64,000 nucleotides of DNA, taken from assembly GCA_965112735.1 (NCBI GenBank), contig OZ218957.1:2480001-2544000 (forward strand). Reading direction: 5' to 3'. Under the pieces are notes generated by a model. That model did no database searches and was not told the DNA's origin. It was given only the letters and a program-made list of their open reading frames with translations. Both the position numbers and the translations under genes were made by a program. The DNA is from Phaeosaccion multiseriatum. Lineage: Eukaryota; Protista; Ochrophyta, other classes. Each line of letters begins with the position of its first letter. Within the stretch, counting starts at the first letter, position 1. Of the stretch, positions 9,806 through 62,694 are shown one piece after another.

Positions 9806-12512
9806 TCATGACCGGACGAGGAAGACGGAAGCCGCTGCCACCACCACTGACCACGCTGGCCACCCCACTACGACGTTGCGCAGCCCGGCTGCAGCAGTTG
9901 GTGATACAGCCGCAGGCATAGCAAGAGAGAAAAGACGGCGCGAAGGTAGAGGCGAAGAGAGGAGGTAGACAGACGGAACAAAAGCAGCAGATGATAAAAC
10001 AGATGGACCACAACAATGCCATTGCCTGACACCTGATACTCATACTCATACAGAGTCACAGAGGCGGGGGGCTGGAGGACCAACCGGGTCATAGGCGACA
10101 CACGCAAACACACGTACCGCTGCACGCACAGACACACATACACACATATGTACACACACAAACACACGCACACACACACGCACACGCACATGCACACACA
10201 CACACATGCACATACGCACGTACCGCTGCACTGGGACTCGCCACAGCAGTACGAAATCGTCACGTCCACTTCCGTCCCGTGCGCTGTCGTGACCGTTGTC
10301 TCCCCTGCGTAAGTTGGTGATACAACGCGTCATGCACACGGCACCATGTATGTGCGTGCGTGTGTGCACACAAACATACACATACATACATACGTACATA
10401 CATACGTACATAGATACATACACACACATACACACATACATACACACATACATACATACATACATACATACATACATACATACATACATACATACATACA
10501 TACATACATACATACACATCAGTGCGTACAGGCGGGGGGGGGGGATCGAGACAGCAGAGCATCAGATGCATCAGTTGGTGGTACAGCAGGAACCTTATCT
10601 TGGCACATGTCAAACATCCCCATGTACCCGTCGAATGTCCTATGCACCCCCCCCCCCCCCTGTCCTGACACCCACTACTCTCCCCCTCGACTCACCCACC
10701 TACCAACCCACTCTTTCAGTCCCTTTCTGAAGGCAACGGAACCAAGACCAAGCCGACAATGTAAGCCTCACTCGCTCATTTGCATTGTTCAGCTCGCTCG
10801 TCAGACACAAAATCTTATGGAAAGAAGACTAGAAAAAGGAGTGGCGAAGCTAACACTGTCCGTAGTCTTATGTAACTACGTACGTACCTAACTCGCATGA
10901 CGCGTCCTCATCCGTCCCCCACGTTCCCCAGCAGTCCCTGACATAATACTCTGAGTAGTACGTGTCCCACTCCCACTCGGGCACTGAGCACGAGGGAGGG
11001 AGGGAGGGACGGAGGGACGGAGGAAGTAAGTAAGGGAGCGACGGAGGGAGGGAGGGAGAGAGGGAGAGAGGGAGCGAGGGAGGGAGGAAGGGAGGGAGGG
11101 AGGGAGGGAGGAAGGGAGGGAGGGAGGGAGGGAGGGAGGGAGGGAGGGAGGGAGGGAGGGAGGGAGGGAGGGAGGGAGGGAGGGAGGGAGGGAGGGAGGG
11201 AGGGAGGGAGGGAGGGAGGGAGGGAGGGAGGGAGGGAGGGAGGGAGGGAGGGAGGGAGGGAGGGAGGGAGGGAGGGAGGGAGGGAGGGAGGGAGGGAGGG
11301 AGGGAGGGAGGGAGGGAGGGAGGAAGGAAGGAAGGGAGGGAGGGAGGGAGGAAGGGAGGGAGGGAGGGAGGGAGGAAGGGAGGGAGGGAGGGAGGGAGGG
11401 AGGTAGGAGGAGGGAGGGGAGGGAGGGAGGGAGAGAGGATGGGGTAAAGCGGAACGGGAACAAGAAAGGCGGGAAGGGGGGGGGGAATGCCACGAACGGG
11501 AGACAAGGCACAGTCTTTGCACCACTGTTGCCCCTTTCCTCTTTGTCCCCTCTATGACACGTTTCATACCCTACCGCCCTCTCTCTCTCTCTCTGTCTCG
11601 CTTCCTCTCTCTTCTCCCCCTCTCGCTCCCTCTCCTATCTCTCCTTCTCTCGCTTTCTCCCAGTCTCTGTCTCTCTCTCCCTCCCTCCCTCGCTCTCTCT
11701 CCCCCTCCCTCCCTTTTCTCTTCTGTGCCTCCTCTCTCACTCTCTCCCTCTCTTTTTCTCCTGCTCTCTCTTATCCTCTCTACTCTTTCTCTCTTTCTCT
11801 CTACTCTTATCCCTCCACCCCCCCCCCTCTCCTCTCTCCCCGGCCCCTTTTGTCCCCATGCTGCCCTTCTCATACCCCACCTCACCTAGGAGCCGCATGT
11901 CCCCGACGCTTGCTGTGCGGAACTCGAAGCACGCGCCCGAGGGGCAGGCCCGAACCTGCTCATAGGGTGGCAGAGATGAGACAAGGGAGAGAGGGAGAGA
12001 GGGAGGGAGGGAGGGAGGGAGGCAGGGGGTGGGGGTGTGAGAAGGGGTGGAAGCGTGACATGAGCGAGTTACAGTATGTCTAGTGTGGTACATTTGGATC
12101 AAATGGAAATGGAGAGACATGTCCTTAAGACAAGCCAAGCCAAGCCGGATGAGGAGGAGGGGAGGGGGCGGGGAGGCAACACCAAGATAACGGGGGCGTT
12201 TAGAATCGACTGACTCTCCGACACTCACCCATACTTTGCCGACGTCCTGTCCCTCTCCCCACTGACGGACGCACGGAGAGAGAGGAAGAGCGTGAGTGAC
12301 AGGGGCAACTGAGGCACTGAATTGAGTTGGACTGAGGCGGCAGGGGGTGTGTGTGTGCGTGTAGGCTGTGGTAGGGGAAAACTCACCTCTCCCCAGCCCG
12401 CCCAGCAGTACAGGTTCAAGGCAAAACCTGTTGGTATGAGCAGCAGCAAGGCAGCGAAGCCTGATAACCACCATGCTGCCGTCGGGAGCTTCGGCACGCG
12501 GAGCAGCCACAT
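9806..12512 (-). CDS. Small secreted, probably GPI-anchored, 8-cysteine Ly6/uPAR (three-finger)-like protein
   Basis: Six short phase-consistent exons: 12512-12387, 12261-12229, 11955-11886, 10983-10888, 10304-10224, 9888-9806. They give signal peptide (..WWLSGFAALLLLIPTGFA), then LNLYCWAGWGEWGEGQDVGKVWVRACPSGACFEFRTASVGDMRLLVPEWEWDTYYSEYYVRDCWGTWGTDEDASCELGETTVTTAHGTEVDVTISYCCGESQCSA, then hydrophobic tail GLRNVVVGWPAWSVVVAAASVFLVRS*. Confidence 0.75.
10375..10516. repeat. (TACA)n intronic microsatellite
   Basis: Directly visible. Confidence 0.9.
10993..11430. repeat. (GGGA)n intronic microsatellite; forms the polypyrimidine tract on the minus strand
   Basis: Directly visible; ends just before the acceptor at 10984-10986. 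Confidence 0.9.
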
Positions 12513-12983
12513 CTTTCCTCCAAAGGAAAGAAGCTCCACCTGCGACGATATCCAAGCAAAGCAAGAGCAAGAGCATCACAGTTTAGGTCTTGCGTCAGCC
12601 CATTGAGCCTGAATCTTTTACCCCCACCTTCTCTTCCTCACCTGCCCACTGCTCTCCTTTAACGTCCCTCTCTCCCCTGCTCCTCCCCGATAATTCCTCC
12701 CCCCCTCCCAGGCTTTGGCCGCCGCCGGATTTTTTAACGGTTCCATCCCATTCCTGTCCGAACGCAGGACGAAGAGATCATGGAGGGGAGGGAGAGATAG
12801 ATCGTAGAAGGACTGAAGAGCGTTACCCGTGGAGCAGTCTTCCCTCTAGGGAGTGCGGTGTTCACAGAGTGGACATAAGAATTTAGCAGAAGGCCAGAGA
12901 AGTCATTTCCATCAGTGCTTGTCCTCCGCTTCTGAACTTCTGCGCAAGCTGCTCTCCTTCTCCTATATACAATAACGGCGACA

Positions 12984-15900: not shown

Positions 15901-17033
15901 TGGTGGAGGAAGGGAGGAAGAGCGAGGCTGCCCTTGCTAGGGAGGGGCACAACAAGAGGCTGGCGGAGATGGAGGACCAACACGCAGGGGTGCTTGAGCA
16001 GCTCAAGCAGGAGCTGAAGGCCAAGGTAGAGCAAGCGGCGGAGGAGGTCGGGAAGGCGTTACAGAAGGGTCGGGTGGAGACGCAGAAAGAGGTGAGCCAG
16101 GCGAGGAAGGAGGGCAGGGAGGCGGCAGCGGTGGTGAGGGCAAAGCACGAGGCGGAAACCACGAGGCAGAGGGAGGAGGCGGAGGGCAAGTTGAAGGGTG
16201 TGCGAGCGGAGTGGGAGGCGACGTTGAAGGAGCTGGGGGCGGAGAAGGAGGAGAAGGAGAGGCTCGGCATCGTGTTGAAGGAGGCGAAAGAGTCGTTTGC
16301 GGTACTGCGACAGGAGATGGCTCAGCAGGAGGCAAGGGCTAGGGAGAGAGAGGGCGAGCTGAAGGACGCATTTGCTTCGGCCACGGCAAGCAAGTTGGTG
16401 ATACACGAGGAGGCCGTGAGGGTCCTGGAGGCGCAGCAAACCGAGGAAAAAGCGCTCTTTTCTCGCCAGTTGGAGGAATTGGGAGCGGCGCTGAGGGAGG
16501 CGGAGGATCGATTCGCAATGCGTCCGTCCAGGGAGGAGGACGTGGAGTTGATTCGGCGGTTACAGAGAGAGTCACTGGGGAAGGACGCGTTGGTCAAAAA
16601 GACCATCGAAGAAATGGCCTACTTCAAGAGAGAGCTGCTCAACAGGGAGGAGGTGTACAATCGAAAGTTCAACGCCAATCCTAACGTTGGGGTGATGGAG
16701 GTGGTGAAAGGTCGATCAGGAGGAGGAGGGCTGAGTATCGGAGGCATCGGAGGAGGAGGAGGAGGAGGAGGAGGAGGAGGAGGAGGAGGAGGAAATGGTG
16801 GGAGTGGCGTGGCACCAGGAGGGAGAAAGGGCGGTCGACCTCCTCGTAAGTCCCACCATCGAAGCGTGAGCCTCGGCACCAACGGAGTGCCGGAGGGGGG
16901 GGGGGGAGGGAGCAGTGTCAGCAGTGGTGGAAGTGGGGGCGTAGGGGAGAGAGAGAGAGGTCCCCGTATTCCTGTGGACCGACGCCACTCTATGCCCTCC
17001 AACCAAAGCCCTCAGTATGGGCCCTCAAGATGA
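12984..17033 (+). CDS. FAM184: FAM184A/B-like long coiled-coil protein
   Basis: Exons 12984-13124, 13376-13511, 13822-17033. N-terminal signature LHHKMSKKIAQLTKVIYHLNTKNED, ~1000 aa of heptad-rich E/K/R/A sequence, and C-terminal RPSREEDVELI..FKRELLNREEVYNRKFNANPNVGV typical of the family. Confidence 0.85.
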
Positions 17034-17320: not shown

Positions 17321-18417
17321 CTAGAGAGCCTTCTTAGACCCTACCGGCTGCCCCACCTCCACCGCCACGCTATTGTGGGGCAGACTCGTTGTGCTTCTTG
17401 GGTTGGGACTCAGACAAACGGACCTGTTGGTGACGCCGTCGCCAGCCTCGGACCTGCGGTACTGCTGCTCCTGCTGCTGCTGCTGCTGCTTAGTAGTAGT
17501 ACTAGTAGTAGCAGCAGGAGCAGCAGTTACAGAAGCCCCCCCCATCCCCCAAGTCCAAAGACAGCTCATCCAACACCAGCAGCACGTCACGCCACACACT
17601 ACCCTCGCCCCCAGCGAGCGAGCCACCCTCCGCCCCACCACCCCGACCAACACACCCACCAGTATCACCAACAGGCCCACCACCCCAGTCGCCAACCCGA
17701 GCCGCTCCACCGCACAGCCCGAGGGAATGACCGGAGTTGAACACATGTCCAGGGCCTCAAGGTGGGTTTCCATCCGGTCGCATGTGCTTCGTGTGAAGCC
17801 CAGCACGGGCGTTCCGGGGGGGAGATGACTTCCTCCTCCTCTTCCTCCTCCTCCTCCTCCTGCTGCTGCTCGACCCCCACTCCCCACCGCTCGAACGGAG
17901 TAGACGAGCTCTCCTCTACACACGGGAGGCCCGTCCCCCCCTGGGCAGAGCTCGCAGCCCACCTCTTCTCCTCCTTGCGCAGCAGCAGCCGTAGCACCAC
18001 CACCACCACCACCACTCTCAGCACTCGGTGATGCAGCCCAGTCAATCTCCAGGAAGCCAAAGTTTCGCCCCAAGAAGAAGCCGCTCCGTGGGTCTGGGTC
18101 GCTACCACCATCACCACCGCCCTCACCATCACCATCACCATCACCATCACCCTCCCCTGCCCCTGCCCCTGCCCCAAGCAATGCCTGCAGCAAGGCGCCT
18201 ATCCCGTGCATTGCCCGTTCCCCTCCATCTCCTCCTCCTCCTCCTCCTCCTCCTTCTGCTCTCTGTGAGGTGGAGGCGGAGGCGGCGGCGCTCCACACGT
18301 CTTCAGCGACTTCATCCCATCCCACCCATCCCAAGCCTCTCCCTTGCTGCTGCTTCTGCTTCTGTGCCACCAACTGTTGCCCCTGTTTCTGCCCCTGTTG
18401 CTCCTGCTGTACCACCA

Positions 18418-18450
<33 letters not shown>

Positions 18451-18918: not shown

Positions 18919-20445
18919 GTGTGTGTGTGTGTGTGAACGCATCGGTACGTGGGTGGGTGGGTGCATGCGGAGTTCAGGGGAGAGAAGGGTGGCCGCTAAG
19001 CGTGTGAGAGTCGCAAGTAGAGGTGGTTGTGTCCTGATGACTCATGACTCCTCAGATGACGTCATCGTGCCATCAAATGCCATCGCGACACTCGTGTTGA
19101 ACGTACTCCTCTTCTCTGGTTACCTGATTGAGCAGGTGGAGCAGCCTTTGCTTGCTGCGAGGAAAGTATCCCCAACTCTCCTGCACAGTCACAGTTGTCA
19201 GCACCTGCGGCGGAGGAGGGAGGGAGTGAGGGAGGGGAGAGAGGGGAGAGAGGGGAGAGAAGGGAGAGAGGAAGGCCGAGTGAGATGGACCCAGCTGTAT
19301 CACCAACTGCTGTGCCGCTGCATCACCAATAACTGCTGCTTTACAGTCTTTGCCACACCGCAATAACATCACATCACGCAAGCACGTACACAAAAACCAA
19401 AAGCGTCGACGGGGGGAAGTGGGGGGGGCGGTCAACGCACTGAAACTGAAACTGACACTCCGTCCCTCCCTCCTCCCCTCCCCTCCTTCTTTCCCTCCCT
19501 CCCTCCCTCCCTCCCTCCCCTCCCCTCCTTCTTTCCTCCCTCCCTCCCTTCCTCCCTCCCTCCCTCCCTCCCTCCCCTCACCTGAACGGTACTAACGAGG
19601 ATGTGCGCTGCTGCGGGGCTGTCCGAGAGCTCCTCCTCAAGGAAAGCCCACTGCTCCTCCCCCAGCATATCTCCGTCGTAGTCCGACCCTAGGCAGAAAG
19701 CAGTGGACACCGCCCGAGCCAACGCCCCCACTCTCGCGCTGAAGGGTAGGCGTGCGAACCAGGGCGAAGAGAGGAAGCTGAGGTAGAAGAGGTCTCGCTC
19801 TGTGCGGACATCAAGGAAGATGATCTGAGAGAGAGAGAGAGAGAGAGAGGTGAGGGAGGTGGTGGGAGGGAGGGAGAGAGAGGGGGGGGGCATCCCCTCA
19901 CAACACACACACTACCACACACACATATGCACATATACCCTCACACGCATTCACACACACAGGGCCCACACCTTAATCTGCTTGGGGCCCGTGCCGAGTG
20001 TCCGGGTGTGGTACAGCGCACTCTTGTTGCTCCCGTCTGGCCTCCTCAGTCTCTCTCGGCGAGGGTCTGTCTCCGGCGCTCCCAGGAAGTCGAGGAAGAG
20101 GCTCTGTCGCTCCACCTTGTCCCCCAGCTCCTTTCCGGCGTCATTCACGCCCATGTCGTGGTCGTCATAGACTCCATCCACTATAACGCCCGTCTCGAGG
20201 AAGCGCTGGTAGGCTTCCACCTCGGACTGCTTCTCGTAGGCCTCTCGGAGCGCCTCCACGCTGCCTTCTTCGCTATTGTAGACGGCGTCACCGGCCCAGA
20301 GCCACACCTGCGGAGCGAAATCCCTTGTAAGCACATCCCAGACAGGCTGCTCCTCGTACTGCTTGTTGCACGAGCCGAAGGCAATCCTCGTAACGTCCTT
20401 CTCGCTGTCATCGCTCCTCTCCTCCGCGAAGGCCTGGTTGCTCAT
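17321..20445 (-). CDS. phoD: PhoD-family alkaline phosphatase D with C-terminal transmembrane anchor (true start may lie further upstream)
   Basis: Exons 20445-19972, 19824-19582, 19204-19124, 18763-17321. Motifs [71 protein letters not shown]. Hydrophobic [20 protein letters not shown] near the C-terminus. Confidence 0.9.
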
Positions 20446-21019
20446 CCTTTCCTCTTTATCTCCACACAGCTCTATCAGGTCAGACGTTAGACGTCCCCTC
20501 CTCGTCGGCGTCGTTCCCCTTTGTTGTGGCTCTATTACTTTCGTGAGCGTCGTTCTCCTTTGTTGTGGCTCTATTACTTTCGGCGTGTTTACGTGAACAC
20601 CTCCGCTGAAGGCATCCTTCTTCTTGCTCGCCGTCCAGCTCTAATAGGTCAGCTGCAAGACAAGAGAGTTAAGGCGCGCATGTATACAGCTTCGCTTCGT
20701 GTGAGCCGCCGCAGCAGGACGCAACGCATGCATGAACGAGTCGGCCCGAATGTTCCAGAGGTTACTTTTAGCCCTCGACTTTGAGTGTCGAGTGTTGAAT
20801 GTTGAGGTTGATTGTGCTTTTTTTTCCCCCTCGTTTACCGGGGCTCAGTGGGTTCCTCTCAGGCCCTCCCTCACCCCCCGCTTTCCCTCTTCAGTGCTCT
20901 CTTGTCCAATCATACACTGTACCACCAACTCTTCTCACTTCCCTCCTTTCCTCCTCGCCTTCGTGTTTGTGCTGTCATGCTGTCATGATGTCATCCTTTG
21001 TGCGGCAGAAGAGACATCT

Positions 21020-23670: not shown

Positions 23671-25230
23671 CCTACCTCGTCGCTCTGAAAGTAGGGCTCT
23701 TCCTGCACCCCCAGGGCGTGCTTGTTAAACACGTGAAAGAGTGTGCCTACAAAGGCCTCGACGTCGCCATTTGCAAAGAAGCGCATCTTGTTGCTGATGA
23801 CGTGTGTGGTGGAGGGAGGGGGGGTGTCGGAGTGCTGTGCAAGCACCTCGGAGAGTACGTCTGTACACAAGAGAGGGGGAGTACCGGCCAGAACAGCACA
23901 GCAAAGCAAAGCAAAGCAACGTAACGTAAGCAAAACAGACAAAATACGCAAGCCAGTACTGTAAGCAAACAACAAAGCGACCGAGGGGTTCCCCGCCCCC
24001 CTCCATCCTCACCTCCCCCCTCCCCTCCCTCCTCACCTCTACCCTCCCCTCCCTTCCCTTCCCCTCCCCTCCCCTCCCCTCCCCTCCCCTCCTACCTGCC
24101 AGGCCGGCGCTGAAGATGAGCAGGGGTATGGCTTGTGCCTCCAGGTGTGCGAAGAGTTCGGCATGCCCCTCCCGCAGCCTGATGTTGGCGTGTTGCACCG
24201 CCTGAGGGGGAGAGCACAGCCGTTGGTGATACATCAGAGCAGCAGTTGGTGATGTAGCAGCAATTGACGATACAGGAGCAGTTGGTGATACACAAGCAGG
24301 AGGCAGTGTGTGGGCAGTAGCAGAGCAGCAGCAGCAGTAGCAGCAGCAGGAGGAGGAGGAGGGGGGGGGGGGTTGACCTCTGCGTCGCTGCTGACCTGAC
24401 CTGCTGGATTTTGCGCTTGGTGAGGCCATGCTCAAGGATGAGATCGTGGGCCTTACCAACCCACTCCTCCATGAACCTTGGGGGGAGGAGGGGAAGAAGG
24501 GGAAGCGGAGGGGGGGGGGGGGGTTAGGGGGTTGAAGTGCGAGGCTCTCGTCGGAGCAATTATGACGAGGAGAGATGGAAGAAGGAAGGCAAAAACCAAA
24601 AAAAATTGCAGGCGATCATACTCACCAACCAGAGAGACACACACAAAGAGAGAGAGAGTGTGGGTGTGTGTGCGTGTCAGAGAAGGAGGGAGAGAGGCGA
24701 AGGAGCGAGGCATAGGATTACATAGTTGGCCGAGAGGGCGCAGGAACCAGCCACGTTCAATTCCTGAGAGCCGGCCTCTCACCTGACCCGCTCGTCGTGC
24801 GAGAGGGAGTGGTCCACTTCGAGGGGATAGTAGTGGTTCTTGAGAGCAACAGCCTTGGTGTGGTACTCCTCTGAGAGCAGGCCGCACTCTTCTATTACGC
24901 CGTGGCAGCTGCAGCCCCTCCTGGTGGACGAACACACGGTAGACAAGTGAGGACGGGGTAGGGGGGGGGGAGATCGAGAGAAATAAGAGAGACCGATGGA
25001 GACACACACACCAAGAGAGAGACCGCTGGAGAGAGAGAGAGAAAGGGATGCGGGGAGACGGATAGAAACAGGGACACACAGAGAGAGAGAGTGAGTAAGA
25101 GATGGACTGAGAGGGAGAGAGACATGCAGAGACGGAGAGAGAGACGGGATATGAAGAGGCAGACAGGAAGTACAAAGGGACAGAGAGAGACACACACACA
25201 GAGAGAGAGAAAGAGATAGGAACACACACA

Positions 25231-28334: not shown

Positions 28335-28365
<31 letters not shown>

Positions 28366-31300
28366 TGTGTGTGTTTGTGTGTGTGCGTGTGAATGTGTGT
28401 GTGAGACAGAGAGAGAGAGAGAGTGTGTGTGTGAGGGTGGGGGGCCGGGTTGTATCACGCACTCACTCCCTAACTGACTGAATCACCCACCTTCCTCCCT
28501 CCCTCCCTCACCTCTGGGGTTGACCTTGCCGTCTCCATTTCGATCAAAGTCCTCGAACACCCTCGCAAAGTTGGCCGGACCTCTTGACTCTGTCGCGAGC
28601 CGAACAATCTCACGTCTGAGAATGCCCTCCACACGGCTCAATCCGCCGCCCTTCCCTCCACCTCCTCCTCCACGGGGGGGACTTACTCCTCCTCTTCCCC
28701 TCCTCCTACTCCTGCTCGCATCCTCCTCTTCCTCGTCTTCCCCGTCTTGCTCCCGGAAACTAACTCTCGACCCGCTCCTCCTTCTCGGACTTCTCCTCCG
28801 TGCCGCTGTATCACCAACTGCTGCAGCTGCTCCTGGAGAGTCTAAGGGCCCTGATCCTCGTCGCGAAGGGCTGGCGCTTCCTTTTCTCCCACTGCCGCTT
28901 CTGCTGCTCCTTCGCCCCCTCACTCCCCCCCGTCTCCTTCTCGCCCCGCCCTGATACCGATACCCCTCTACATCCTCAGAATCCGTGTATTCCTCCTCCT
29001 CCTCCTCCTCCTCCTCTTCGTCATTCCTGACGTCACCCCTCCTCCCTCCCCTCCGACCGCCGCGCCTGTTGGTGCTGCGCGACGGAGAAGCCGAGTTCGA
29101 GGATGTCAATCCGCCCTTTCTTCCCCCTGCCCTCCCTCCCCCCCGGCGGTTACCCCCACGACGCCCCTCCTCCTCCTCATCGTCGCCCTCCTCTTCCTCC
29201 TCCTCGTCGTCGTCGTCGTCACTGTACCAGCCCCCCTCCTCGCCTGCCCTTCCTCCTTCCCTCCCCAACTCCATCACCACCACCTCCTCAGCAAACTCCA
29301 TGAAAGCATCAAGGCTCCACACGCCCTCCTCGAAGCTGTCGAAGCGATACGTCAGCCTTCGCACCTCGTCCGTCGTGAGTTCAATTCCCAACTTGGCAAG
29401 GGCGCGCGCCATGTCCTTCTCGGAAACCAAACCAGAGCCGTCCTTATCAGCCTTGAGCAGCACTCTCTTGGTGGATTCAGACAGGGTATCACCAACTGCT
29501 GAAGGTCTTCGCCTGTCCTCCGCCCTCTGCAGTCCCCTCTGGACCTTCCCAATCACGTCGGCGTGATTCGCGTCTCTCACAAACACCACAAAGTCCGTGT
29601 ACGTCACCACCACCCCTCCTCCTCCTCCTCCTCCCCTACTACCCCCACCACCCCCACCACCACCACGGAGGGCAAGGCGAGCCAGGAGAGCCCGCTCCTG
29701 CGCCGCTTTAAGGCGGAAGCCCAACTTGCGCAGTCCGGTGCTCAGTTGGCTCTCCCCAATGGAGCCCCGCCGCTGTGTGTCGAAGTGGTTAAAGGCCTTG
29801 CGAAGCTTGCCCGGTTTGGTGTACTCAAACATCCTGCGGATCATCTGTCGGAGTCGTTCCTCGACCTGCCACATGCCACCACCTCCTCCTCTTCCTCCTC
29901 CTCCACCACCTCCTCTTCCCTCCCTCCTCCTGGTCCCGGAGACGCGCGCTGCATGAAGAAGATTGAGGTAATTCACATCTCCAGCCGCCCCCCCTTCTTC
30001 TTCTCCCCCTTCCCCTCCTCCGAAGCTCGCCTCCAGCGTCTCAATGTCCTTCTCAGTGAGCAGCGAGGCATGCATCGACCTCAGCGCCGCTCGAAAGTCC
30101 GACGACGGAATGAAACCGTCAAAATTCTTGTCGTACTTTTCCATCGCATGGCGATAGTCGAATCCCCTCTTGACACACTCCCCCACCTCTCTGGCCAGCC
30201 TGTCCACTGCCTCTTGACGAAGTCCCACCGACGCGGTGATTGCATGACCTGCATCCCCCATCACACCACCACCAGTTGGTGATACAGCACCGCGACTGTT
30301 CCTCCTCCCACCACCTCCACCCTCCACTGCCCGCACAAACTCCTTGTAGCTGATGAAGCCGTCGCCATCTGCGTCGAACACAGCCATGAGCTGCGCCAGC
30401 TCCGCCCGAGACAAGGCCTCAAAGCCCATCTCCTGCAAGCCGCGGCCAAAGTCTGATAAACTCACTCTCCCCGAGCCGCTGCGGTCAAAGGCGGTGAACA
30501 CTCGTCGCATAGGAGCTGTAGCAGTTGGTGATACAGCACCGCCGCTCTTACTGCTCCTCCTTCCTCCTCCTCCGGCGTGCCTGGCCAAGCGGCAAATCTC
30601 CCCACGCACCCTCTCCAGCAACCGCCGCACCCCCTCGGACACCCCTCCTCCTCCTCCTCCTCCTCCTCCTCCTCCTCCTCCTCCTCCTCTGAGTACATCA
30701 GCCAGGAACTTTCCATAGTCGAAGGGCGCATTCCTCTTTCCAGGCTCGCAGTAGAGCGACAGTAACGCCCGCACGTCTCTCTGTGCGGCAGGCAGGCCCA
30801 GCCTATGGAGCACCCTCTCCACGTCTCTCCTATCCACGAGGCCTTCGTGGCGTCCTCCTAGGTCCTTCTCTTCGAAGGCTTGATGCAGCCGTCTCGCCAC
30901 TGCTGCAGCGGTACTTGCACCACGACCACGCTCACGGCCACGTCCCCCAGCAGTTGGTGATACAGAGGAGGGCATACGCGCTACCACGGCTCTGATCTTG
31001 CTCATGGTGTCGTCTCCTCCGCCAAGGCCGGTGTACATGCCACGCTGCTGTTGCGGCTGCTGTATCACCAACTGCTGCCCTCCCATGGTGGTCAGCTTGA
31101 GAATGGCCGTGGGGTCTTTGGGAGTCGCCCACTTCAGGAATTTGGCATAGTCCACGCCCACTGAATCACCAACACGCCCACCACCACTAGCACCACCACC
31201 GCCGCCGCTGGCAGAGCTAGACAACGACGAGAGGAATCGATCTGCGAGCAGAGGCACCTCCGTGCGGCGACTAAAGGGGAAACCGCACGTCGCAACGGCC

Positions 31301-37300: not shown

Positions 37301-39881
37301 TGCATCTCTTTTTCCTCTCTAGACCGTCTCCCTGCATCTCTTTTTCCTCCCCAGAACAAACCAAAGACGCAACGGGACTATCCACCCACCCACCGACCCA
37401 TCCACCCACCCACCCACTCCCTTCCTCCCTCCCTCACTCACATCGTCTCCCGAGTAAAGCTTCATGGTGTCCGCAAGTACCGCTGCCCCTGCCTCCGCCT
37501 CGTTGTGCCGGATGCGAAGCTCCTGCAGGGCCCTCTCTGCCCTGAGCTTGTCCTCTCGGAGCTTGTTTGCCTGTTTCTGTAACGCCACCAGGGCCGCGTG
37601 GTGCGTCTGGGCAGTCTCCTGTTGTGTGATTTGTGTGTGTATGTGTCGAGTGATTGATGGGATGGCGGGGGGGGGGGAGTTAAGTTCAGCAGTTGATGAT
37701 ACAGGGCACGGCACAGAACAGCACACGGCAAAACGGAGGATAGAGGCATATGGGCAGGTGTACATTGCGCACGAGCGTGGCGAGGAGTGTAGCCCTGCTC
37801 TTCTCCTGCTGTACCACCAACTGCTGCATCCTGCCTGCTGCCGCTGCCGAGCGCTGTCGGTCTGTACCCCCCCCCCCTTCCTCCCCTCCGCCCATGTACC
37901 TGCAGATGCTGAATCTTGAGCTGACTGGCGTGATCCTCCCTCTCAAGTTCGAGCAGCCTCTCGGCCCTCTCCTGATTCTGAAACGCCGCGCTGATGAAGG
38001 GGCTCTCGCAGAGACGAGTCACCTGTTGTTGTCGTCGTCGTACAGTAAAGCAAGCACAGAAAGACCAAAGTTAGAAGTAAGTAAGTAAGTAAAGGAAGGG
38101 AAGCAAGAGCAAGACAAGGCCAAGCAAGCAACGAAAGCAAAGACCAAAGCAAAGCGAATAAGACTAAAGAATCAAGGAGGCCAAGCAAGGGAAGTGCGTG
38201 AAGAGGGGAGGACGAAGCAAAGCAAGGCAAGCAAGGCAAGCAAGTTGGTGGTACAGCAGACAAGCAAAGCCCGCAGACAGTAAGGAGAGCAATCAAGCAC
38301 GTTTGAGAGAGACGCACACTCATATCCACCCACTCATTCACCCCCTATCCCATCCACCCACCCACCCACCCACCCATCCACCCACCCACCCACCATTCAC
38401 CCCCTATCCCATCCACCCACCCATCCACCCACCCACCTACCCACCACCCACCCACCGACCCACCCACCCACCCACCCACCTACACACACACACACTGCTA
38501 TCCATCCACTGCCACCCACCCATCCACCCACCCACCACCCACCTGCTCCTCCAGCGTTCGGTTGCCTGCCCGCAGCTCTGCCACTGTCTCCTCGAGGTCT
38601 GCCGCCCTCGCGCTTTTCGCCTCCGCCACGTCCTTCTCGTGCTGCGCCTCCTGTTGCAGACAGTTACAGTTACACAGTTATACGGTTTCAAGTTTCAGTT
38701 GAATTGGCTTTGTTCGTTAGCCAACACCTCAACGGGACCAAACCAACTCTTTCGAGTCGATATTGCGGATCGATATTTTGTATCGTGGGATCGATGATTT
38801 GTATCGTGGGATCGATGTTTTGGTTCAGGTCTGTCTATTGGACACAACAGAGAGAGCAGAACCCTCCCAACCCTCCCCACCCCTTCCTACCCCACCCCAA
38901 CCAACCCCACCTAACCCACCCAACCAACCCCACCAACCCCACCTAACCCACCCAACCAACCCCACCTAACCCAACCAACCCCACCTAACCCAACCAACCC
39001 CACCTAACCCACCCAACCAACCCCACCTAGCCCACCCAACCAACCCCACCCAACCCACCCAACCAACCCCACCTAACCCACCTAACCAAACCCACCTAAC
39101 CCACCCAACCCAACCCAACCTAACCCACCCAACCCAACCAACCCCACCTAACCCACCCAACCAACCCAACCTAACCCACCCAACCCAACCCAACCTAACC
39201 CGTCCAACCCAACCAACCCCACCTAACCCAACCCAACCCAACCCCACCTAACCCAACCCCACCCAACCCATCCCAACCCAACCCAACCCAACCCAACCCA
39301 ACCCACCCCACCTAACCCAATCCAACCCAACCCAACCCAACCTAACCCACCCAACCCAACCAACCCCACCTAACCCAACCCAACCCAACCCCCCCAACCC
39401 CCCCAACCCAACCCAACCCAACCCAACCCACCCCATCCAACCCAACCCCACCTAACCCACCCAACCCAACCCAACCTAACCCAACCAACCCCACCTAACC
39501 CACCCAACCCAACCCAACCAACCCCACCTAACCCAATCCAACCCAACCCACCCCACCCAATCCAACCCAACCCAACCCAACCCAACCCCACCTGCAACGC
39601 CCTCCTGAGGTCCCTGAGCTGTCGATTGCCCTCCTCCAAGCGCTCCACCGACCCTCCATGAAGGTCTGCCATGGCTCGACTTCGGGCCTCGAGGTGGTCG
39701 TAGCGTGTCTGCAGGAGCTGCATTTTGGCACGAGCGTCACGGAGCTCGCGTTCGACACTCTCCACCTCCTCGTCTTTTGTTTGGTGAGGGTGAGAGGGTG
39801 AGAGGGTGAGGGTGAGGGTGAAGGCGGGGGTGGGGGTGAGGGTGAGGGTAAGGGTGAGGGTGAGAGTGAGGGCGAGGGTGA

Positions 39882-39938: not shown

Positions 39939-40894
39939 GGAGGGGGAGCGCGAGGGTGGGGGGAGGGTGGGGGGAATGAGAGGCTAGTTCGATCGTGCAT
40001 ACTTTTGGTTCCACGGAATGAGAGGGTAGTTCGATCGTGCATACTTTGGTTCCACACAATTCTAGCAACAGGGGTGTGAGGGGGGAGGCTCCCAACAACA
40101 GCTCGCTCAACCTCAAACTCTCTTACTCCTTCTCCTCAAAAGCATCCCGACGCACCCACTCACGCACCGACTCACGCACGTACTCACCCACTTGTCCTGA
40201 TGTCTTGCTCCTCCTGGCGGCCGCTGCAGCTGCCATGGGAATGTCTCCCTCCTCCTGTGGTCCTATCGTATCACCACCTGCCATACGTGCTGAACGCAGA
40301 GAAGCGTTCTCATCCCTGGCCTTCTTAAGCTGTACCTCAGCGGCAAGTACCCTCTCTCTGAGCTGATCCACCAACTGCATGAGTTTCCGAGCTGGGAGGT
40401 CTCCCCCTCCCAAGTCGTCCATCGAGACACGCACCCCCTCCTCTTCATCATCCCCTCCTCCTCCTCCTCCTCCCCCCCTTGCTTTGAGAGACACGTGTTC
40501 GTTGCTGCAGTGTGTCCTTGCCCCCCTCTTTGAGGGAGAGGACGGTCCTCTGCTATTGCTCCTCGCCCCCCCGCGGGTGCTGGTGTTGGTTCCGTGGGTG
40601 AGGCCTGTGCTTCTCGCTGTTCCTCCTGGAGGTAGGGCGCGAGAACGCGCAAGCCGGGCGCTGGACACCTATGGGGGGGGGGGGGGAACGAGAGAGGGAG
40701 GGGGAGGGGGAGAGGGGGAGAGGGGGAGACAGATAAAGATAAAGAAGATAAGGCCACAAAGAGAAGGTGGAAGGGCGGGTGGCGGGTGCGGCGCGTGTGA
40801 GCATTAGAGAAGAGAGGGAAGGAAGGAAGGGAGGGAGGGAGGAGGAGGAAAGCACGGCCCTTGCAGGGCTTGACAACGACGCTTTGGGATAGAC

Positions 40895-40942: not shown

Positions 40943-42381
40943 CCTCTCTGCTTTTACCTTCTTCTTCTCCTTCTCGAGTGCCTGAGTCAAGCCCTGGTTC
41001 TTGGCCTTGAGCTCTCCATTCTCCTTGTGCAGCTCCTTGTTGCGGCTCTGAAGATCGTCAACCATCTCCTCTAGCTCCTTGTTGCGTGGCCCACCGGGGA
41101 CTGTAGCAGGAGCAGCAGTTGGTGATACAGCAACAGCAAGTGGTTGGTACATGCAGCAGCAGTAGTGAAGTGGAGTGTTCGTGCACGGAAGCACGCGCGA
41201 AGGAAGGGCAGGGGGGGGGCGGAGGGAGGGAGGGGGGGACGGAGTTAGGTAGGTAGGTAGGTAGGGAGGGAGGGAGGTAGGAAGGGAGGGAGGGAGGGAG
41301 GGAGGGAGGTAGGAAGGGAGGGAGGGAGTGAGTGAGTGAGTGAGGGAGGGATAGAGGGAGGGAGGGAGGGAGGGAGGGAGGGAGGGAGGGAAGGAAGGAG
41401 GGAGGGAGGGAGGGAGGGAGGGATAGAGGGAGGGAGGGAGGGAGGGAGGGAAGGAAGGAGGGAGGGAGGGAGGGAAGGAGGGAGGGAGGGAGGGAGGGGG
41501 ATATCGACCCCCCAGAGAGATTGTGTGTGACGGTGTGACGGCGCTGCAATACAGCTTTCTGGCTCAGCACTGCAAGACAGTGGTATACACTTCCACTTCG
41601 GTCGTCAATATGCATCATCAACGGCTGATCGATGCACCCACCGACCCACCCACCGACCCACCCGCCCGGTGTGCTGGCGTGACAGCGCTGTAAAGTGAGC
41701 GTCTCTCCCTCCCTCCCTCCCCCCCTCCCTCTCTCCCCCTCCCTCCCTCCCTCCCTCCCTCCCTCCCTCTTTCTTTCTATGCCTTTATCTCCCCCCCTCT
41801 CGCTCCCTCTGTACCCACCTACCCTGCCTGGTGTGTGGGTGCCGCCCATACTGTCCTCTCTCCCTCTCTCTCTCCCTCTCTCTTTCTCTCTCCCTCTCTC
41901 TCTCTCTCTCCCCCTCTCTCTCTCTCCCTCTCTCTCTCTCTCTTCTCTCTGCCCTCTCTCCCTCTCTCTCTCACACACACACTCTCTCCCTCCCTCATTT
42001 TTAGCATGGACGGCACCTGCCTGGTGTGTGGGTGCCGCCCATGCCTCTCTCTCTCTCGTTCTTTCTTCTCTCTCTGCCCTTTCTCTCTCTCTTCTCCCTG
42101 CCCTCTCCCTCTCTCTCACACACACACTCTCTCTCTCCTTGCCTTCCTCCCCCTTCCTCATCTTAAGCCCACCTGGTGTGTTGGTGCCGCCCCCGCCGTC
42201 GTCGTCGATGCGCTTCTTGAGCTTCATGAACTTCTCGATCTGGGCCAGCTTCGTATTCATACTGCAGCGGATAGGGCAGGAGAGGAGAGGAGGAGGAGGA
42301 GAAGAAGGAGAAGAAGAAGGAGGAGGAGAAGATGATGATGAAGAAGAGAAGAAGAAGGAGAAGAAGAAAAAGCAGAAGATC

Positions 42382-43711: not shown

Positions 43712-46700
43712 GAAGGAAGGAAGGAAGAAAGGGAAGGCACCTCAAGTGAATTCGATATCAGTTAAGAGAGGAGTGGAAGGTTTAGAAACACTCCAAAATT
43801 CGCTCTGGAGACAAAAAGACCAAAAAACAAAAGGGTATCCCAGAGTACAGTACGTCGAAGAAAGAGTGGCAGAGTAAGCCCAGCACTTGCGTCGTATCCG
43901 CGGTCACCTCCATCATGTCAGGCTGTCCAGATCAATAGACCTTAACCAATCAATCGATCAATCAGTCCATCCATCAATCAATCAGTCAATCAATCAACCG
44001 TCTCCCAATGTCTGTCCCCCCCTCGAATCCCCTCCTTCGTGAAACTCCAAACTCACCTTGACGTTAACGTACTGGTCGCCTCTATTCTTGGGATTGTCCA
44101 AGGAAGGGACACCCTTGCCCCTGATTCTCAGCGTCGTGTTGGGCTGCGTGCCTGTTGGCGATCCACAACACAATCACAGGAGGCGCGTTTCTAAGTCAAT
44201 GAATGGCCCAGGCCCATGCAGACATAGACAATGCGATGAGAACAAACCAACCAACCAACCGACCCTTCACACACACACACACACACGCGCGCACACACAC
44301 ACAGAGAGAGAGACACACCTGCGGGGATCTTCATCTGCACGTCACCGTCGATGGTGGTGACGAGCACCTCGTCGTTGCCGAGGATGGCGTCAAGGTAACT
44401 CACAGGCACGTCGGTGAAGATGTCCGTCCCCTCCCTGCGGAACCGCTTGTCCCTGGCCACGGAGATGAACACGTACTGTGTGTGTGTGTGCGTGTGTGTG
44501 TGCGTCGAGAGGAGTATTTGTACGGGATGAGAGAAGTACGGGGTGGGGGTTGGATGGCAGTGGATGGAAATGGACGGCGGTGGATGAGGGCTTAAGACCT
44601 ACAGAAACGAGAGCACAAGAGCGAGCTAGAGGGGGGCCGGGGGGCTGTAGGGGGAGAGAGAGAGAAGAGAGAGAGTGACAGGCAGGGAACATTCCTTGGA
44701 TCGATTGAGGGTTGGTTCGATCGGCCTGAAACGCCTGAAACGTTCCCTCTGAGAGCGCCTCTGAGAGTCCTAAAACCTCCTTCCTTCCTTCCTTCCTTCC
44801 TGACTGACTCACCAGATCTCCGGATGGGCCTCCCTTGGGCCCTGCATCACCCTCTCCCTTGACGCGCAGCTTGTTTCCCTCGTCCACTCCCGCGGGAATG
44901 CGCACCTTCACCTGCTTGCTCCTCTCCACGACGCCCTTACTGAGAGCCGAACAGCCGCACAATCCAATCCAAGTCAAGCCATCCATTGCCATGACAGCAG
45001 CGAAGAGAGAGAGAGAGAGGAAGGGAGAGAGGAGAGAGAGGGGGGTGTGCATGCAAGCAGGATGGTGAATGCGTTAGCTTGTTGGAGGAGAGGTACTGAG
45101 GATGAGAAGGAAGGGACTGTGTCTCTCTCCTGCTTCTTCTTCCCCTCCCTCATCCTCATCCGCATCTGCTTCTTCTCCTCCTCCTCACCCCTTCCCTCAA
45201 CGACTGTGTCTCTCTCCTCCTTCTTCTTCCCCTCCTCCTCGCCCTCTTCCTCATCTGCTGCTCCTCCTCCTCACCCCCTCCCTCAATACACTCCTCCTCA
45301 GCTTCCCGACCTCCCCCCCGCCCTCCTGCTCCTCCTCCTTCTCCTCCTCCCCCCTCCCCCTTTCCTCCTCCTCCTCCTCCCCCTACTCCTCTACTCACCC
45401 ACTGCAAGACCCGCAATACTCCTCCACTTGCTCTCCGGTGCCTCTGCAGGCAGGGCAAGTAGTCTGCGATTGGAAGTTGCCCAGGGGGGTACGCTGCACG
45501 GCCATCACCACCCCTGGTTACGCGGGTGTGTGTGCGTGTGCGTGGTGTGTGTGCATGTATGTATGTATGTATGTATGTATGTATGTATGTATGTATGTAT
45601 GTATGTATGTATGTATGTACGTACGCATGTATGTACGTATGTATGTATGTATGTATGTATGTATGTGTATATGTGTGGTGTATTTGGCGGGGGCGGGGGG
45701 GTGCAGGGGGATAGGGCGGATAAGAGAGCGAGGAGAGAGACAGGAAGGGTGAGTGGTGTGCGTGTATCTCAAAAGAAAGCTTAAAAGCTTCCAACAACAG
45801 AAGGAAGGAAGGAAGGAAGGAAGGAAGGAAGGAAAGAAGGAAGGAGGGAAGGAAGGAATGAAGGAAGGAAAGAAGGAAGTAAGGAAGTAGCGCGTCCACC
45901 CCCACCCTCCGCCAAGTATCTTGCCCCTCCACCCCTCTGCCTCTCAGCCCCTCGACGCACGCACACACACACACACACAGGGAGAGCAAGACAGACAACC
46001 ACATTCCATTCCCTGCCAGCCCTCGGTCCCCCCCCTCCTCTCTCTTCCTCCCTCTCTGTCTCCCCCCCCCCCCTCCCCTCTCTCTCCCTCTTCTCCCTCC
46101 CTCCCTCCCCTCTCCTACACACAGCACAGCATCCCCCCAACCAACACCTCCAAACCCCAATCCCAAGCTCACCAGTCACACCCACCCACCCACCCACTGT
46201 CCTGACACCCACCCACCCACCCCCTGTCCTGACACCCACCCACCCACCCACCCACTGTCCTGACACCCACCCACCCACCCACCCACTGTCCTAACACCCA
46301 CCCACCCACCCACTGTCCTGACACCCACCCACCCACCCACCCACTGTCCTGACGCCCACCCACCCACTGTCCCGACACCCACCCACCCACTGTCCTGACA
46401 CCCACCCACCCACTGTCCTGACACCCACCCACCTTGTCCTCCACACTGTTGGCACGTGCTGACCTTGGCTCCAGGCTTGACCCCCGAGCCCGTGCAAGTG
46501 TTGCATGACTCAAAGTGCCTAATCCGCACTTTCTCCTCGCCTCCAAAGCACGCTGTATTGAAACTCAAATCCAAGTCCACTCGCAGATCGTCTCCCCTCT
46601 GTGGTCCCTGCGGCTGTCTTCCACCCCCGGGCCCCCTCCCTCCCCCTGCCCCTCCACCCCCGAAGAAGGTCTCGAAAAGGTCTCCCAAATCTATACCCAC

Positions 46701-51829: not shown

Positions 51830-53278
51830 TCAGTACGTCAGGTGTCGCTCCCTAATGTCGAACCCTTGCTGGTCTGCTGTCCCAACAGCCGCAGTCGCAG
51901 TTGCAGCAGTTGGTGATACATCGAACCCCATGTCAGCAGCCTCGGGCAGCCCCTGGGGGGACACCTTTGTTCGGGACGGAGCAACCGTCTGCCGCTTCCC
52001 CTTCTCTGGCACTGTTTCACTCATTTCCATCGGTGTGGGCCCTCCCGTTCTCCCACCCCTCCACCTTCTCCCCCCACCACCACTATCATCATCGTCATCC
52101 CCTGCTGCTGCTACTGCTGCTGTACCACCAACTGCTGCATGTGCGAGATGGCCGGGCACTACAGCATCGGTAGCGTGCCCACCCCCGACCCCATCCGCAG
52201 CCACCACCTCAGCAGGGTGGGCGTCACTGCCACCGCCGCCCCAATAGCCCACCCCACTGATCGGTGACACATTGTTGCTTCCCCTCTTCGGTGACAAGCG
52301 ATAGGCGGTCCACCCTCCACTCTTCCTGCCCACGTGGAAGGAGGAAGAGCGCGACCGCCTCCCTCGCTTACCCCCCACAGACCCAGCACTCCCTGACCCG
52401 CTGCCGCTGCTCCCTCCTCGTGCTTCAGGGGTGACAGCTGCCGAAGTGCGGCGATGAAGCAGATTGCTCACAAAGCTTGTGAATCGATCCCCGGGGCTTC
52501 CTCCTCCTCTTGCTCGTTCTGCTGCTCCTTCTCCACTCAAGTCTCTACGGCGTAGGGCGCGGGCGTGGGGTGACGTAGACATGGCGGACGACCTTCCTCG
52601 TTGGACAATGGGTTCACTGCCGTGCGTTCGTCGGTGGCCTGTGTCAACCTCCCCCGCCTGTTCCACCAGCTGTTGTGCCTCTCTTGCCTGGGCCTCCTCC
52701 AGCTCTGCCTGCAGTTGAGCGTCGCTAAACTGCCTATCACTTTCCTCCTTCGATTGCTCCTCCTGAATCATTTCCCCAAGTTCCTGATGAGTGAGGAGGA
52801 GAAGGAGGAGGAGGAGGAGGAGGAGGAGGAGGAGGAGGAGGAGGAGGAGGGAGGCGGAGGGAGGAGGAGGAGGGAGGCGGAGGGAGGAGGAGGAGGATAG
52901 TCAGTAAGAAACAGGGCTTACCCACGCCTCCACGCATCCGCCCACGCACGAACGCACGCACGCATGTACACACTACCCTCGCCTCGCTCTTTGACCACTG
53001 AAGAAACTAAGCCACGCAGTAATACGTACGTACGTACGTACGTACCTCCAAGATGGCATCAAAGTCTGGACGGCGGTCGGGATTGACTGCCCAGCAGCGC
53101 CGCAGCAAACGTCGGAGACCTTTGGGGAGATTGGCGAGGTTCGGCCGCTCCTGCTTGTCGATGACTGATGGAAGGTGAGAGAGAGAGAGAGAGGGAGAGA
53201 GAGGCAGAGCAGAGGCATGGGCAGAGCATGCCCACAAGTAGAGAGAGGGGTTAGGGGGGCTCTTGCTTGTGGATGACT

Positions 53279-58707: not shown

Positions 58708-58744
<37 letters not shown>

Positions 58745-61700: not shown

Positions 61701-62694
61701 GTGAAAAGAGAAGGGAACGAATCGGATGGCAACGGATGGCCCCTGAGGGTCGGTCCTTCTCACTCTCTCACCCTCTCATCAGAGACGTGCTCATGTGTGT
61801 TCCTGCTGCCGCCCCTCCCCTCCCCTCCCTCCACACTTGGCGCCGCCCCCCAGATTACCAACACGCCCACGCTGACCTACTCGCTGAGCAAGGGGCTCTA
61901 TTTTGGGGTGAGCGTGCAGGGTTGCGTAGCCCTTACGCGGGCGCTGCTCAACGAGCAGTTCTACGGCCTTCAGGTGAGGGGGGGGGGGGCTGCCTGCCCA
62001 TATGCCTGCCCATATGCCTGTCCATATGCCTGTCTTGCCTTGCAGGGGGATGGCAGTGGACAGGTAAAGGGTCTGTGGACGTGTGAAGAAGGGGACGGGC
62101 GGGTGGGGGTGGGGGGGGGGGAGGGGAGTATTCATGGCGTCGAATCACAGGGTGCTCACTCCTTGTATTTCCCCTGATCCTTCTTCCAATTGTTTGTTTG
62201 CCAATGATCACCAACTTGTCAAGGTGGACCCCCACTTCATCCTCTCCGGCGGGCTGCAGAAACCCCTCGCCGCTGAGCCGCTCTACGTGGCGTGCGATCG
62301 CATGGACAGACTCTTCCTGCAGGCCAGGCAGCGGAAGGAGAGGCAGGAGATGCAGCAGCAGCCGCAGCGACAGGGCCGTCAGGAACAGGGCGGGGAGGAG
62401 CACGGCGGCGAGTTCAGCAGCCGGGGCAGCGACATGACTGGGAATGCTGTGGTGCTCGAGGATGGTGTCACGCTCTCGTGGGGGGCGCAGGCAGTGCCGG
62501 AAGCAGCAGCACAAGCGTCACTAACGGCGACGGCGGCGGCGGAGAAGGAGGAGGAGCGAGGGGAGGAGAGAGGGGGGGAGGAAGAGGGTGGCGAAGAGGA
62601 GGAAGGTGTGAAAACGGAGGAGGGGGAGGGCGAGGGGGAGAAGGGGGACGAGGAGGAGGAGGAGGAGGAGGAGGAGGAGGAGGAGATCCACTAA
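56771..62694 (+). CDS. FYVE zinc finger + SYLF/Ysc84 (DUF500) domain protein
   Basis: Phase-consistent exons 56771-56817, 56983-57064, 57491-57662, 58040-58220, 58552-59256, 59630-59762, 59963-60060, 60352-60539, 61052-61467, 61854-61973, 62224-62694 (first four less certain). FYVE: WLGD..CMAC..RRHHCRACGGLFCQAC..RVCRSC. SYLF: IPVHLL..VIKGG..GTG..WSPPSA..GLQVG..YSLSKGLYFGVSVQG..NEQFYG. Confidence 0.88.
60560..60882. repeat. (GGAGA/GGGGA)n intronic pentamer repeat
   Basis: Directly visible. Confidence 0.9.

Follow-up and report, generated by a model that had tools for sequence, protein, structure and literature searches.

How does one short DNA word come to be repeated along a eukaryotic chromosome, in introns, in intergenic DNA and in the exons of unrelated genes? 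The question is raised by 64,000 nucleotides from the ochrophyte Phaeosaccion multiseriatum (NCBI GenBank assembly GCA_965112735.1, contig OZ218957.1, positions 2,480,001 to 2,544,000 of the forward strand; this whole stretch is called the window here and is numbered from its first letter), in which an earlier note, made from the letters alone, had noticed a dispersed oligonucleotide of ~19 bp and had proposed a motif-writing or motif-drive system. The feature is real, strongly non-random and seated at the level of DNA, and we found no described eukaryotic counterpart. We lean, with a confidence that falls short of even, towards reading the motif as an ultra-short interspersed DNA unit of 18-21 nt that multiplies by short-patch templated copying.

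The exact 12-mer AGTTGGTGATAC occurs 15 times on the two strands of the 64-kb window, where dinucleotide shuffles lead to an expectation of 0.01, and none of 100 shuffles reached even two copies. Its A>G variant (G-type copies hereafter, as distinct from A-type) occurs six times, against 0.00 expected. With the 14-mer CAGTTGGTGATACA and up to three mismatches, 41 matches were obtained where 3.75 are expected, distributed over zero, one, two and three mismatches as 10, 12, 7 and 12, that is, over a graded range of divergence; recognisable copies in the window number roughly 35-40, about one per 2 kb. Moreover, in an unbiased k-mer census from which low-complexity words had been removed and in which tandem matches had been collapsed, no other complex k-mers are dispersed as widely over the window as this same word and its overlapping neighbours. 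The inventory of the earlier note was accordingly reproduced almost letter for letter: the 15 exact copies stand where it had placed them, with the sole shift of one position (41117 for 41118), the count of six A>G copies agrees at each place, and the degenerate copies that it had mentioned are present at ~18364, 19317, 24221/24244/24262, 31572, 37691 and 62205.

Aligned, the copies define a unit of ~18-21 nt with the consensus (C)TGCAGCAG-TTGGTGRTA-CAGCAG, and a logo drawn from the 21 best copies reads CAGC-AGTTGGTGRTAC-AGC(AG). In triplets, the motif is CAG CAG TTG GTG RTA CAG (CAG), the CAG units before and after the centre being in phase. At the centre, GTTGGTG hardly varies, and identity in the flanks drops stepwise outward, from 71-86% at positions -4 to -1 and +12 to +14 to ~50-60% beyond. 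The first two upstream CAG units and one downstream unit behave as parts of the motif; position -6 is a T in 10 of the 21 copies, where a CAG tract would give A (p = 0.005), and the upstream side is thus (C)TGCAGCAG. When either half of the motif was used alone as an anchor, so as to avoid selecting for the core, the opposite half was intact in ~80% of cases, and conservation proved asymmetric, the CAGCAG side being better kept than the ACAGC side. The copies use the two strands evenly (14:14) and five reading frames, and counts in 4-kb bins show them to be clustered (variance/mean 2.55, p = 0.0008).

Their density is uncorrelated with that of CAG tracts (rho 0.08), the CAGCAG-richest bins holding 0-1 copies and the motif-richest bin few tracts. 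Most copies are flanked by one or two CAG units only, and TTGGTGRTA is the sole recurrent complex interruption found after CAGCAG. The (CAG)n context described by the earlier note therefore stands in so far as CAG flanks the copies in phase, and needs qualification in so far as these units belong to the motif, -6 is a T and the density does not follow the tracts; the targeting of CAG tracts as such is weakened by the uncorrelated density. About 20 of the loci are single units, besides one four-unit array and four doublets, whereas micro- and minisatellites are head-to-tail tandem arrays. The principal copies are the following, their exon or intron status having been inferred from open reading frames (ORFs) and Pfam exon mapping.

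9895..9908, plus strand: exact 14-mer with flanks GCTGCAG..C, found in the 12-mer and 14-mer scans
10311..10324, plus strand: copy with one mismatch, AAG 5' variant, outside long ORFs
10572..10585, plus strand: G-type copy (TGGTAC)
16392..16405, plus strand: copy in the coiled-coil coding sequence of FAM184, read KLVIH, length-neutral against orthologues
17661..17674, minus strand: copy with two mismatches and CTG on both sides, in the hydrophobic LLVIL segment of a 550-codon ORF
18363..18376, minus strand: degenerate G-type copy 45 nt away from 18408, in the Q-rich tract of the 550-codon ORF
18408..18421, minus strand: G-type copy following (CAG)10, read QQLVVQQ
19296..19309, minus strand: exact copy, with a second copy carrying a 3-nt insertion ~20 nt upstream on the motif strand (~19315-19336)
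20918..20931, minus strand: G-type copy, outside long ORFs
24220..24233, plus strand: first of four array units (period ~18 nt), probably intronic, upstream of the UMPH-1 exon
24243..24256, plus strand: second array unit, two mismatches
24261..24274, plus strand: third array unit, three mismatches
24279..24292, plus strand: fourth array unit, exact
28807..28820, minus strand: exact copy in the EF-hand ORF, sense, read AAVGDTAA
29485..29498, minus strand: copy in the EF-hand ORF, sense, read SAVGDTLS
30273..30286, plus strand: exact copy in the EF-hand ORF, antisense, read GAVSPTGG, its 3' flank AGCACCGC in common with 30522
30522..30535, plus strand: exact copy in the EF-hand ORF, antisense, read GAVSPTAT
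30951..30964, plus strand: exact copy in the EF-hand ORF, antisense, read SSVSPTAG, convergent with 31061 (110 bp)
31061..31074, minus strand: exact copy in the EF-hand ORF, sense, read QQLVIQQ
31162..31175, minus strand: degenerate copy with three mismatches, read RVGDSV in a degenerate EF loop
31571..31584, minus strand: copy with one mismatch, read QQLVIQQ, in an EF-hand module that is 8-9 residues longer than a paralogous module exactly here
36394..36407, minus strand: copy with a degenerate half-copy GTGAGTGGTACAG directly upstream
37690..37703, plus strand: copy with one mismatch, convergent with 37810 (120 bp)
37810..37823, minus strand: G-type copy, 25 nt identical to 18408
38242..38255, plus strand: G-type copy, AAG 5' variant, in (GCAA)n-like context
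40267..40280, minus strand: degenerate copy with two mismatches
41116..41129, plus strand: exact copy, with a degenerate partial copy ~25 nt downstream
51907..51920, plus strand: exact copy, read DVSPTAA in a 356-codon ORF, convergent with 52121 (214 bp)
52121..52134, minus strand: G-type copy, read AAVGGTAA
58754..58767, plus strand: copy after a poly-Q tract in a FYVE-containing ORF, read RQLVIL

Is it the peptide or the DNA that is conserved? Seven copies lie in one uninterrupted ORF of 1731 codons (28483-33675, minus strand), a chain of EF-hand pairs, and are read there as AVGDT (28808, 29486), as VSPT in antisense (30274, 30523, 30952) and as QLVIQ (31062, 31572). One further copy sits in the coiled coil of the FAM184 orthologue (KLVIH), the 550-codon ORF has copies in a Q-rich insert (read QLVVQ) and in a hydrophobic segment, and others are found in the FYVE-containing ORF and in the 356-codon ORF; the four-unit array lies just upstream of the UMPH-1 exon and is probably intronic. 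Three frames on both strands are thus used, as had been claimed. In the two large ORFs, ATA makes up 6% of Ile codons, GTA 10% of Val, TCA 9% of Ser, CCA 11% of Pro and ACT 12% of Thr. Since three read-outs are identical as GTA-TCA-CCA-ACT, a string of rare codons, peptide selection cannot explain them. Three different read-outs within one ORF, in codons that account for only 6-12% of their synonymous sets, confirm the earlier view that the conserved identity lies in the DNA, not in the peptide. Of the ~16 copies in long ORFs, none is read in the frame containing TGA, so that the statement that this frame is never used holds as a count, at a significance of p~0.054 only. The name PhoD, which had been given to the 550-codon ORF, did not hold: a Pfam search returned no PhoD match for this ORF, in which only a GDVHFAE-type metallophosphatase signature is visible.

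The EF-hand protein (27375-33675, minus strand) is itself unusual. It is very long, the 1731-codon ORF being followed by a further EF-hand ORF (27375-28271), and it consists of some dozen EF-hand-pair modules with poly-Gly/Glu linkers between them; in several, low-complexity inserts have destroyed the second EF-hand loop. No close homologue of the ORF was found, its only database relative being 25% identical. At 30273-30535, two antisense copies with the flank AGCACCGC (GAVSPT), 249 bp apart, bracket exactly one intact EF-hand-pair module, and they resemble the direct repeats that would border a module that has been duplicated or can be exchanged.

The copies also form subfamilies. The bases AGCAG follow the core in five of six G-type copies and in one of 15 A-type copies (Fisher p = 0.0017), although the linked bases are 6-8 nt apart, and three G-type copies extend as ...ACAGCAGGA. 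Exact identities of 20-25 nt connect pairs of copies, for instance 18408 and 37810 (25 nt), 9895 and 28807, or 30273 and 30522, the last pair having a non-CAG 3' flank in common. Together, the linkage and the long identities suggest families that may descend from different source copies. Short arrays are found as well: four units at 24220-24292, with a period of ~18 nt, and doublets, in which a degenerate second copy lies at most 50 nt away, at 18363/18408, 19296, 36394 and 41116, one of them with a 3-nt internal insertion. Three convergent pairs are spaced by 110, 120 and 214 bp; their interiors are unrelated, and in two of the three an A-type copy is paired with a G-type copy. Purely local templating draws no support from the order of the copies: by hand count, 12 of 17 adjacent pairs are alike in their A/G state against 10.6 expected, a difference that is not significant.

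Two sites, in FAM184 and in one EF-hand module, allow insertion to be told from substitution. The FAM184 copy (16392) reads SKLVIH and stands, in the aligned piece, between an invariant L104 and an invariant R158, 55 residues apart; this distance is equal in 8 of 11 orthologues, in a comparison that spans oomycetes to cnidarians. Matches to FAM184 in Phytophthora, Ectocarpus and Scytosiphon agree in assigning the organism to the stramenopiles. As the distance between the anchors is unchanged, the copy adds no length, and it appears to have arisen by replacement or in place, inside a segment constrained by its heptads. The EF-hand module at residues 644-715, when aligned with its canonical paralogue at 1056-1119, has a single gap of 8-9 residues exactly at QQLVIQQG, within the expected calcium-binding loop, and this copy looks like the insertion of a whole unit. 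On these alignments, both modes, insertion-like and replacement-like, seem to occur. In the FAM184 gene (13056-17033, plus strand), the 1092-codon exon is preceded by small exons for the N terminus, at ~13056-13118 and ~13403-13516. A CRAL_TRIO-PH gene, which is absent from the window, neighbours FAM184 in two relatives.

How far does the motif extend beyond the window? Bins with CAG-flanked copies draw contigs to a depth 100-300 times that of their surroundings, with hundreds of foreign contigs running from one copy into another; this pile-up on the motif sites is indirect evidence that many more copies exist elsewhere in the genome. Contigs from four runs (two samples, two studies) reproduce the 5.3-kb EF-hand stretch with seven of seven copies and no indels; the second strain among them differs by four single-nucleotide polymorphisms in 5.3 kb. 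Outside this lineage, the 19-mer and the 14-mer gave only single, chance-level matches per contig in IMG/VR and in JGI/ENA metagenome contigs, and on the same matches an outside donor, viral or environmental, was set aside. Contig L154 of a relative, which has 57% GC and includes a FAM184 orthologue, is free of copies over 9.5 kb and lacks any dispersed 12-mer. The motif thus appears restricted to its lineage, no viral, metagenomic or nearest-relative contig holding several copies. In the literature, the word appears only within primers and a search by topic gave nothing relevant, in agreement with the earlier remark that no description was known.

No conventional element explains these copies. 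Pairwise extension of the flanks and self-BLAST found no sequence shared beyond ~25 nt for any pair of copies, extension stopping at CAG-like bases, and a longer element was rejected on these results and on the three convergent pairs, which have nothing in common beyond the motif. There is no terminal inverted repeat and no poly-A, the only flanking direct repeat is the consensus CAG, the motif is not palindromic, and none of the 44 ORFs of the window contains a reverse transcriptase, endonuclease or transposase domain. Direct tests contradict the conventional mobile element, the satellite, the structured RNA and the artefact alike, and the earlier judgement that the motif is not a conventional transposable element was right. 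A structured RNA or tRNA-derived repeat was rejected, as the window has no Rfam family at the gathering threshold and no tRNA; what we take to be resemblances to the U6 ACAGAGA region, to tRNA D-loops and to the 5' end of tRNA-Gly are partial and gapped, with no D-stem, and were dropped. Two of the candidates put forward earlier were also set aside on anatomical grounds: a transposon excision footprint, as the motif sequence is constant and non-palindromic, and telomerase healing, as the telomere-like arrays of the window are of GGGTTA type and unrelated to the motif, which stands mostly as single units. A degenerate telomere-like minisatellite of this kind, with GGGTTA and GGTTAGGTGGGGTTGG units and a period of 19-24 nt, lies at 38900-39530, far from any visible chromosome end.

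What process could leave such a pattern? In the copying process that we tentatively favour, a 3' end left by a break or a stall, and sharing CAG-like microhomology of a few bases, would prime on an existing copy, synthesis would run through the invariant TTGGTGRTA centre, and rejoining would follow via microhomology on the far side, in templated repair of a gene-conversion-like or polymerase-theta-like type. The resection of the recipient DNA would decide between in-frame addition and length-neutral replacement, and repeated rounds would give the short 18-nt arrays and the doublets. Selection would purge coding copies in the TGA frame or in constrained protein segments, and the survivors would be those in disordered linkers, introns and intergenic DNA. 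Such copying accounts for the subfamily linkage, the long identities, the arrays, the copy bearing an indel and the insertion-like site; the ragged ends would fit variable microhomology junctions, and the graded mismatch spectrum fits a family of mixed ages. We infer the copying chemistry, the template, for which either other copies or some master, DNA or RNA, that was not seen may have served, and the favouring of one word.

Several points weigh against this explanation. To cover FAM184 it requires replacement events, selection for length-neutral outcomes or a compensating loss, and no flank homology at that site backs classical gene conversion. The linkage between A/G state and flank was chosen for testing after the data had been viewed and is suggestive, not decisive, and all motif tests were run within a single 64-kb window. 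Neither a presence/absence polymorphism nor a de novo event was seen, all seven copies recurring in the second strain, a strain too similar for polymorphism to show, and no template or master copy was found. As A/G type differs within two of the three convergent pairs, the members of those two are not recent local copies of each other. Finally, known templated-insertion repair copies any nearby sequence, which leaves the dominance of a single word in a genome unexplained. A stronger proposition, that the organism has an active, sequence-specific system by which one word of 14-21 nt is written into its own chromosomes, genes included, we regard as possible though rather doubtful; it could take the form of a conversion bias tied to a DNA-binding protein, or of oligonucleotide- or RNA-templated patch synthesis from a master template. 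The inference of writing or drive in the earlier note is plausible and unproven; the linkage, the 20-25-nt identities, the 18-nt arrays and the insertion-like site are added here as evidence for copying, and one length-neutral site speaks against a pure insertion model.

The main rival, which we judge unlikely without discounting it, is evolution in place under drive or selection, in which near-matches to the site of a DNA-binding protein come closer to it through point substitutions, either over-transmitted by biased gene conversion or under weak selection. The length-neutral copy within the conserved coiled coil of FAM184 is what it would predict, as is the copy at 17661, whose peptide fits the protein in its hydrophobic LLVIL segment. 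It also suits the position-specific conservation (an invariant centre, a tolerated R, fuzzy edges and the T at -6), the graded tail of partial matches, the presence of copies on both strands and in all tolerated frames, and a density that is independent of CAG tracts and, at ~1 per 2 kb, resembles that of bacterial uptake sequences. A candidate binding site can be read in the motif: CAGTTG is presumably a Myb/E-box-type core, and a zinc-finger array would match the 3-bp periodicity of the consensus. Substitution in place does not, however, lead one to expect that a variant in the centre is linked to flank bases 6-8 nt off, that copies agree exactly over 20-25 nt, that 18-nt tandem arrays and a copy with a 3-nt internal insertion exist, or that a copy sits as an apparent insertion in an EF-hand loop. 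No candidate for the binding protein was identified. Besides, we know of no eukaryotic process that drives towards a bound site, and the hotspot motifs known to us erode.

Remnants of mobile elements are a distinctly improbable source. They could be extremely 5'-truncated copies of a non-LTR (long terminal repeat) retrotransposon whose 3' end, ...GTATCACCAACTG(CTG)n, primes on CAG/CTG-like nicks, or solo terminal repeats of a DNA transposon that has the motif at its ends; the better conservation of the CAGCAG side is as expected if one end primes, and inverted terminal repeats are called to mind by the three convergent pairs, with their spacing of 110-214 bp. Against this, the copies share nothing past ~25 nt, the interiors of the convergent pairs are unrelated, there is neither a target-site duplication besides the consensus CAG nor a poly-A, and the 44 ORFs of the window lack the domains named above; random 5' truncation should moreover yield variable lengths, not a fixed unit, and the FAM184 copy is length-neutral.

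The biology of CAG tracts alone has still less to recommend it, and we hold it for quite improbable. Here, TTGGTGRTA would be a 9-nt interruption that spreads by ectopic recombination or slippage with the tracts as homology arms, and that accumulates because interrupted tracts are stabler. The consensus in phase with CAG on both sides, the uniqueness of this interruption after CAGCAG, the copies that do stand in long tracts (18408, 58754, 52121) and the pile-up of CAG-flanked contigs on motif sites speak for it. The uncorrelated density, with 0-1 copies in the CAG-richest bins, speaks against it, as do the one or two CAG units that most copies adjoin, the T instead of A at -6, and the copies in non-CAG settings, namely FAM184, the LLVIL segment and the (CAC)n context at 30273; nor are copies associated, in the window, with tracts of four or more CAG units. 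As for an adapter artefact, an assembly error or a compositional accident, nothing was found in favour of it and it is scarcely credible: the same seven copies are identical in contigs from two samples of two studies, so that an assembly or adapter artefact, which the earlier note had wished to see checked, is excluded; the copies keep long ORFs open, and not one of the 100 shuffles gave even two copies.

Other dispersed short units are present in the window. A second motif, GATGGCAGTGGATGG, in DNA that is rich in G and probably non-coding, has 19 matches with at most two mismatches where 0.16 are expected; it lies at 27156, 33925, 35850, 38502, 44553, 53477-53541, 61333 and 61485, besides weaker copies, forms an array with a 10-bp period at 53477-53541, and has the core GCAGT(T)GG in common with the main motif. 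A third family, GGTGTCAGGAC(AG), stands as islands within (GGGT)n microsatellites (10662, 22745, 33691-33774, 46199-46425, 49669), with an array of ~10 units and a period of 23-31 nt at 46199-46415 and singletons elsewhere. These two families hint at a general dispersal of single composite mini-repeat units, which would fit a generic copying process; several motif-specific proteins are an alternative. The window carries an extreme load of microsatellites, with tens to hundreds of 12-mers from each of (GGA)n, (GGGA)n, (CA)n, (GA)n, (GAA)n, (CAG)n, poly-G and (ACAT)n, and a strand-biased GC skew changes sign near 28 kb.

Among known systems, the closest in appearance are the uptake sequences of Neisseria (DUS) and Haemophilus (USS) and the cyanobacterial HIP1, likewise words of 10-14 nt that occur about once per 1-3 kb on both strands, in coding sequence as well, in tolerated frames and low-constraint segments, with their identity in the DNA; at least one copy of our motif is length-neutral, and it too is far commoner than chance predicts, inside genes and outside them, on either strand (15 against 0.01). 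Unlike DUS and USS, it resides in a eukaryotic nuclear genome without known uptake machinery, and no gene for an uptake receptor or for a cognate methyltransferase or restriction system was seen in the window; unlike HIP1, it is not palindromic; uptake sequences arise by substitution, whereas the motif has subfamily linkage, tandem arrays and an insertion-like site. Rickettsia palindromic elements, which are selfish DNA, also lie in frame in unrelated genes, where they are tolerated in non-critical segments, but they are bacterial, palindromic and ~100-150 bp long, and the motif, at 18-21 nt, has no structure-forming potential of its own. Templated insertions and template-switch mutations of alternative end joining (polymerase theta; synthesis-dependent microhomology-mediated end joining) are patches of 5-30 nt with microhomology at ragged junctions, direct or inverted, sometimes in repeated rounds, that add or replace sequence; the ragged, CAG-like ends of our copies would fit them. 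Known events of this type nevertheless copy whatever lies near the break, and we know of no case in which templated insertion has amplified one word across a genome.

Interstitial telomeric repeats added by telomerase are an established instance of eukaryotic writing of a fixed short sequence at dispersed breaks, but they consist of the telomere repeat in tandem, whereas the motif is mostly single-copy and unrelated to the GGGTTA-type arrays of the window. Minisatellite cores such as the Jeffreys core and the 12-mers of the Caenorhabditis elegans pairing centres, which are bound by zinc-finger proteins, share with the motif a short core at many loci, sometimes in short arrays, and as for them, protein recognition or a recombination signal is possible; those cores are non-coding and mostly lie in arrays or chromosome-specific regions, in contrast to a motif found mostly as singletons, many of them exonic. 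Miniature inverted-repeat transposable elements, short interspersed nuclear elements, introners and the microsatellite-targeting non-LTR retrotransposons Waldo, Mino and Dong are, like the motif, interspersed, high-copy, on both strands and in simple-repeat context. The motif differs from all of these in having no terminal inverted repeat, target duplication, poly-A or internal sequence and in being 5-10 times shorter than the smallest known elements.

For practical work, the motif marks its lineage, and it can mislead assembly, read mapping and primer design. If it is the binding site of a protein, a density of ~1 per 2 kb entails an architectural role, or one in recombination, across the whole genome, which would be new to stramenopiles. 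If its copies are written or driven, they would represent a new class of eukaryotic genome dynamics and the first eukaryotic counterpart of motif drive of the bacterial uptake-sequence or HIP1 type, in which a unit far below the size of known mobile elements gets into exons, changes proteins by 4-9 residues and is able to replace coding sequence that is conserved. Such a process would offer a tractable system for the study of templated repair or biased conversion at a defined word, and would constitute a new source of variation in protein linkers.

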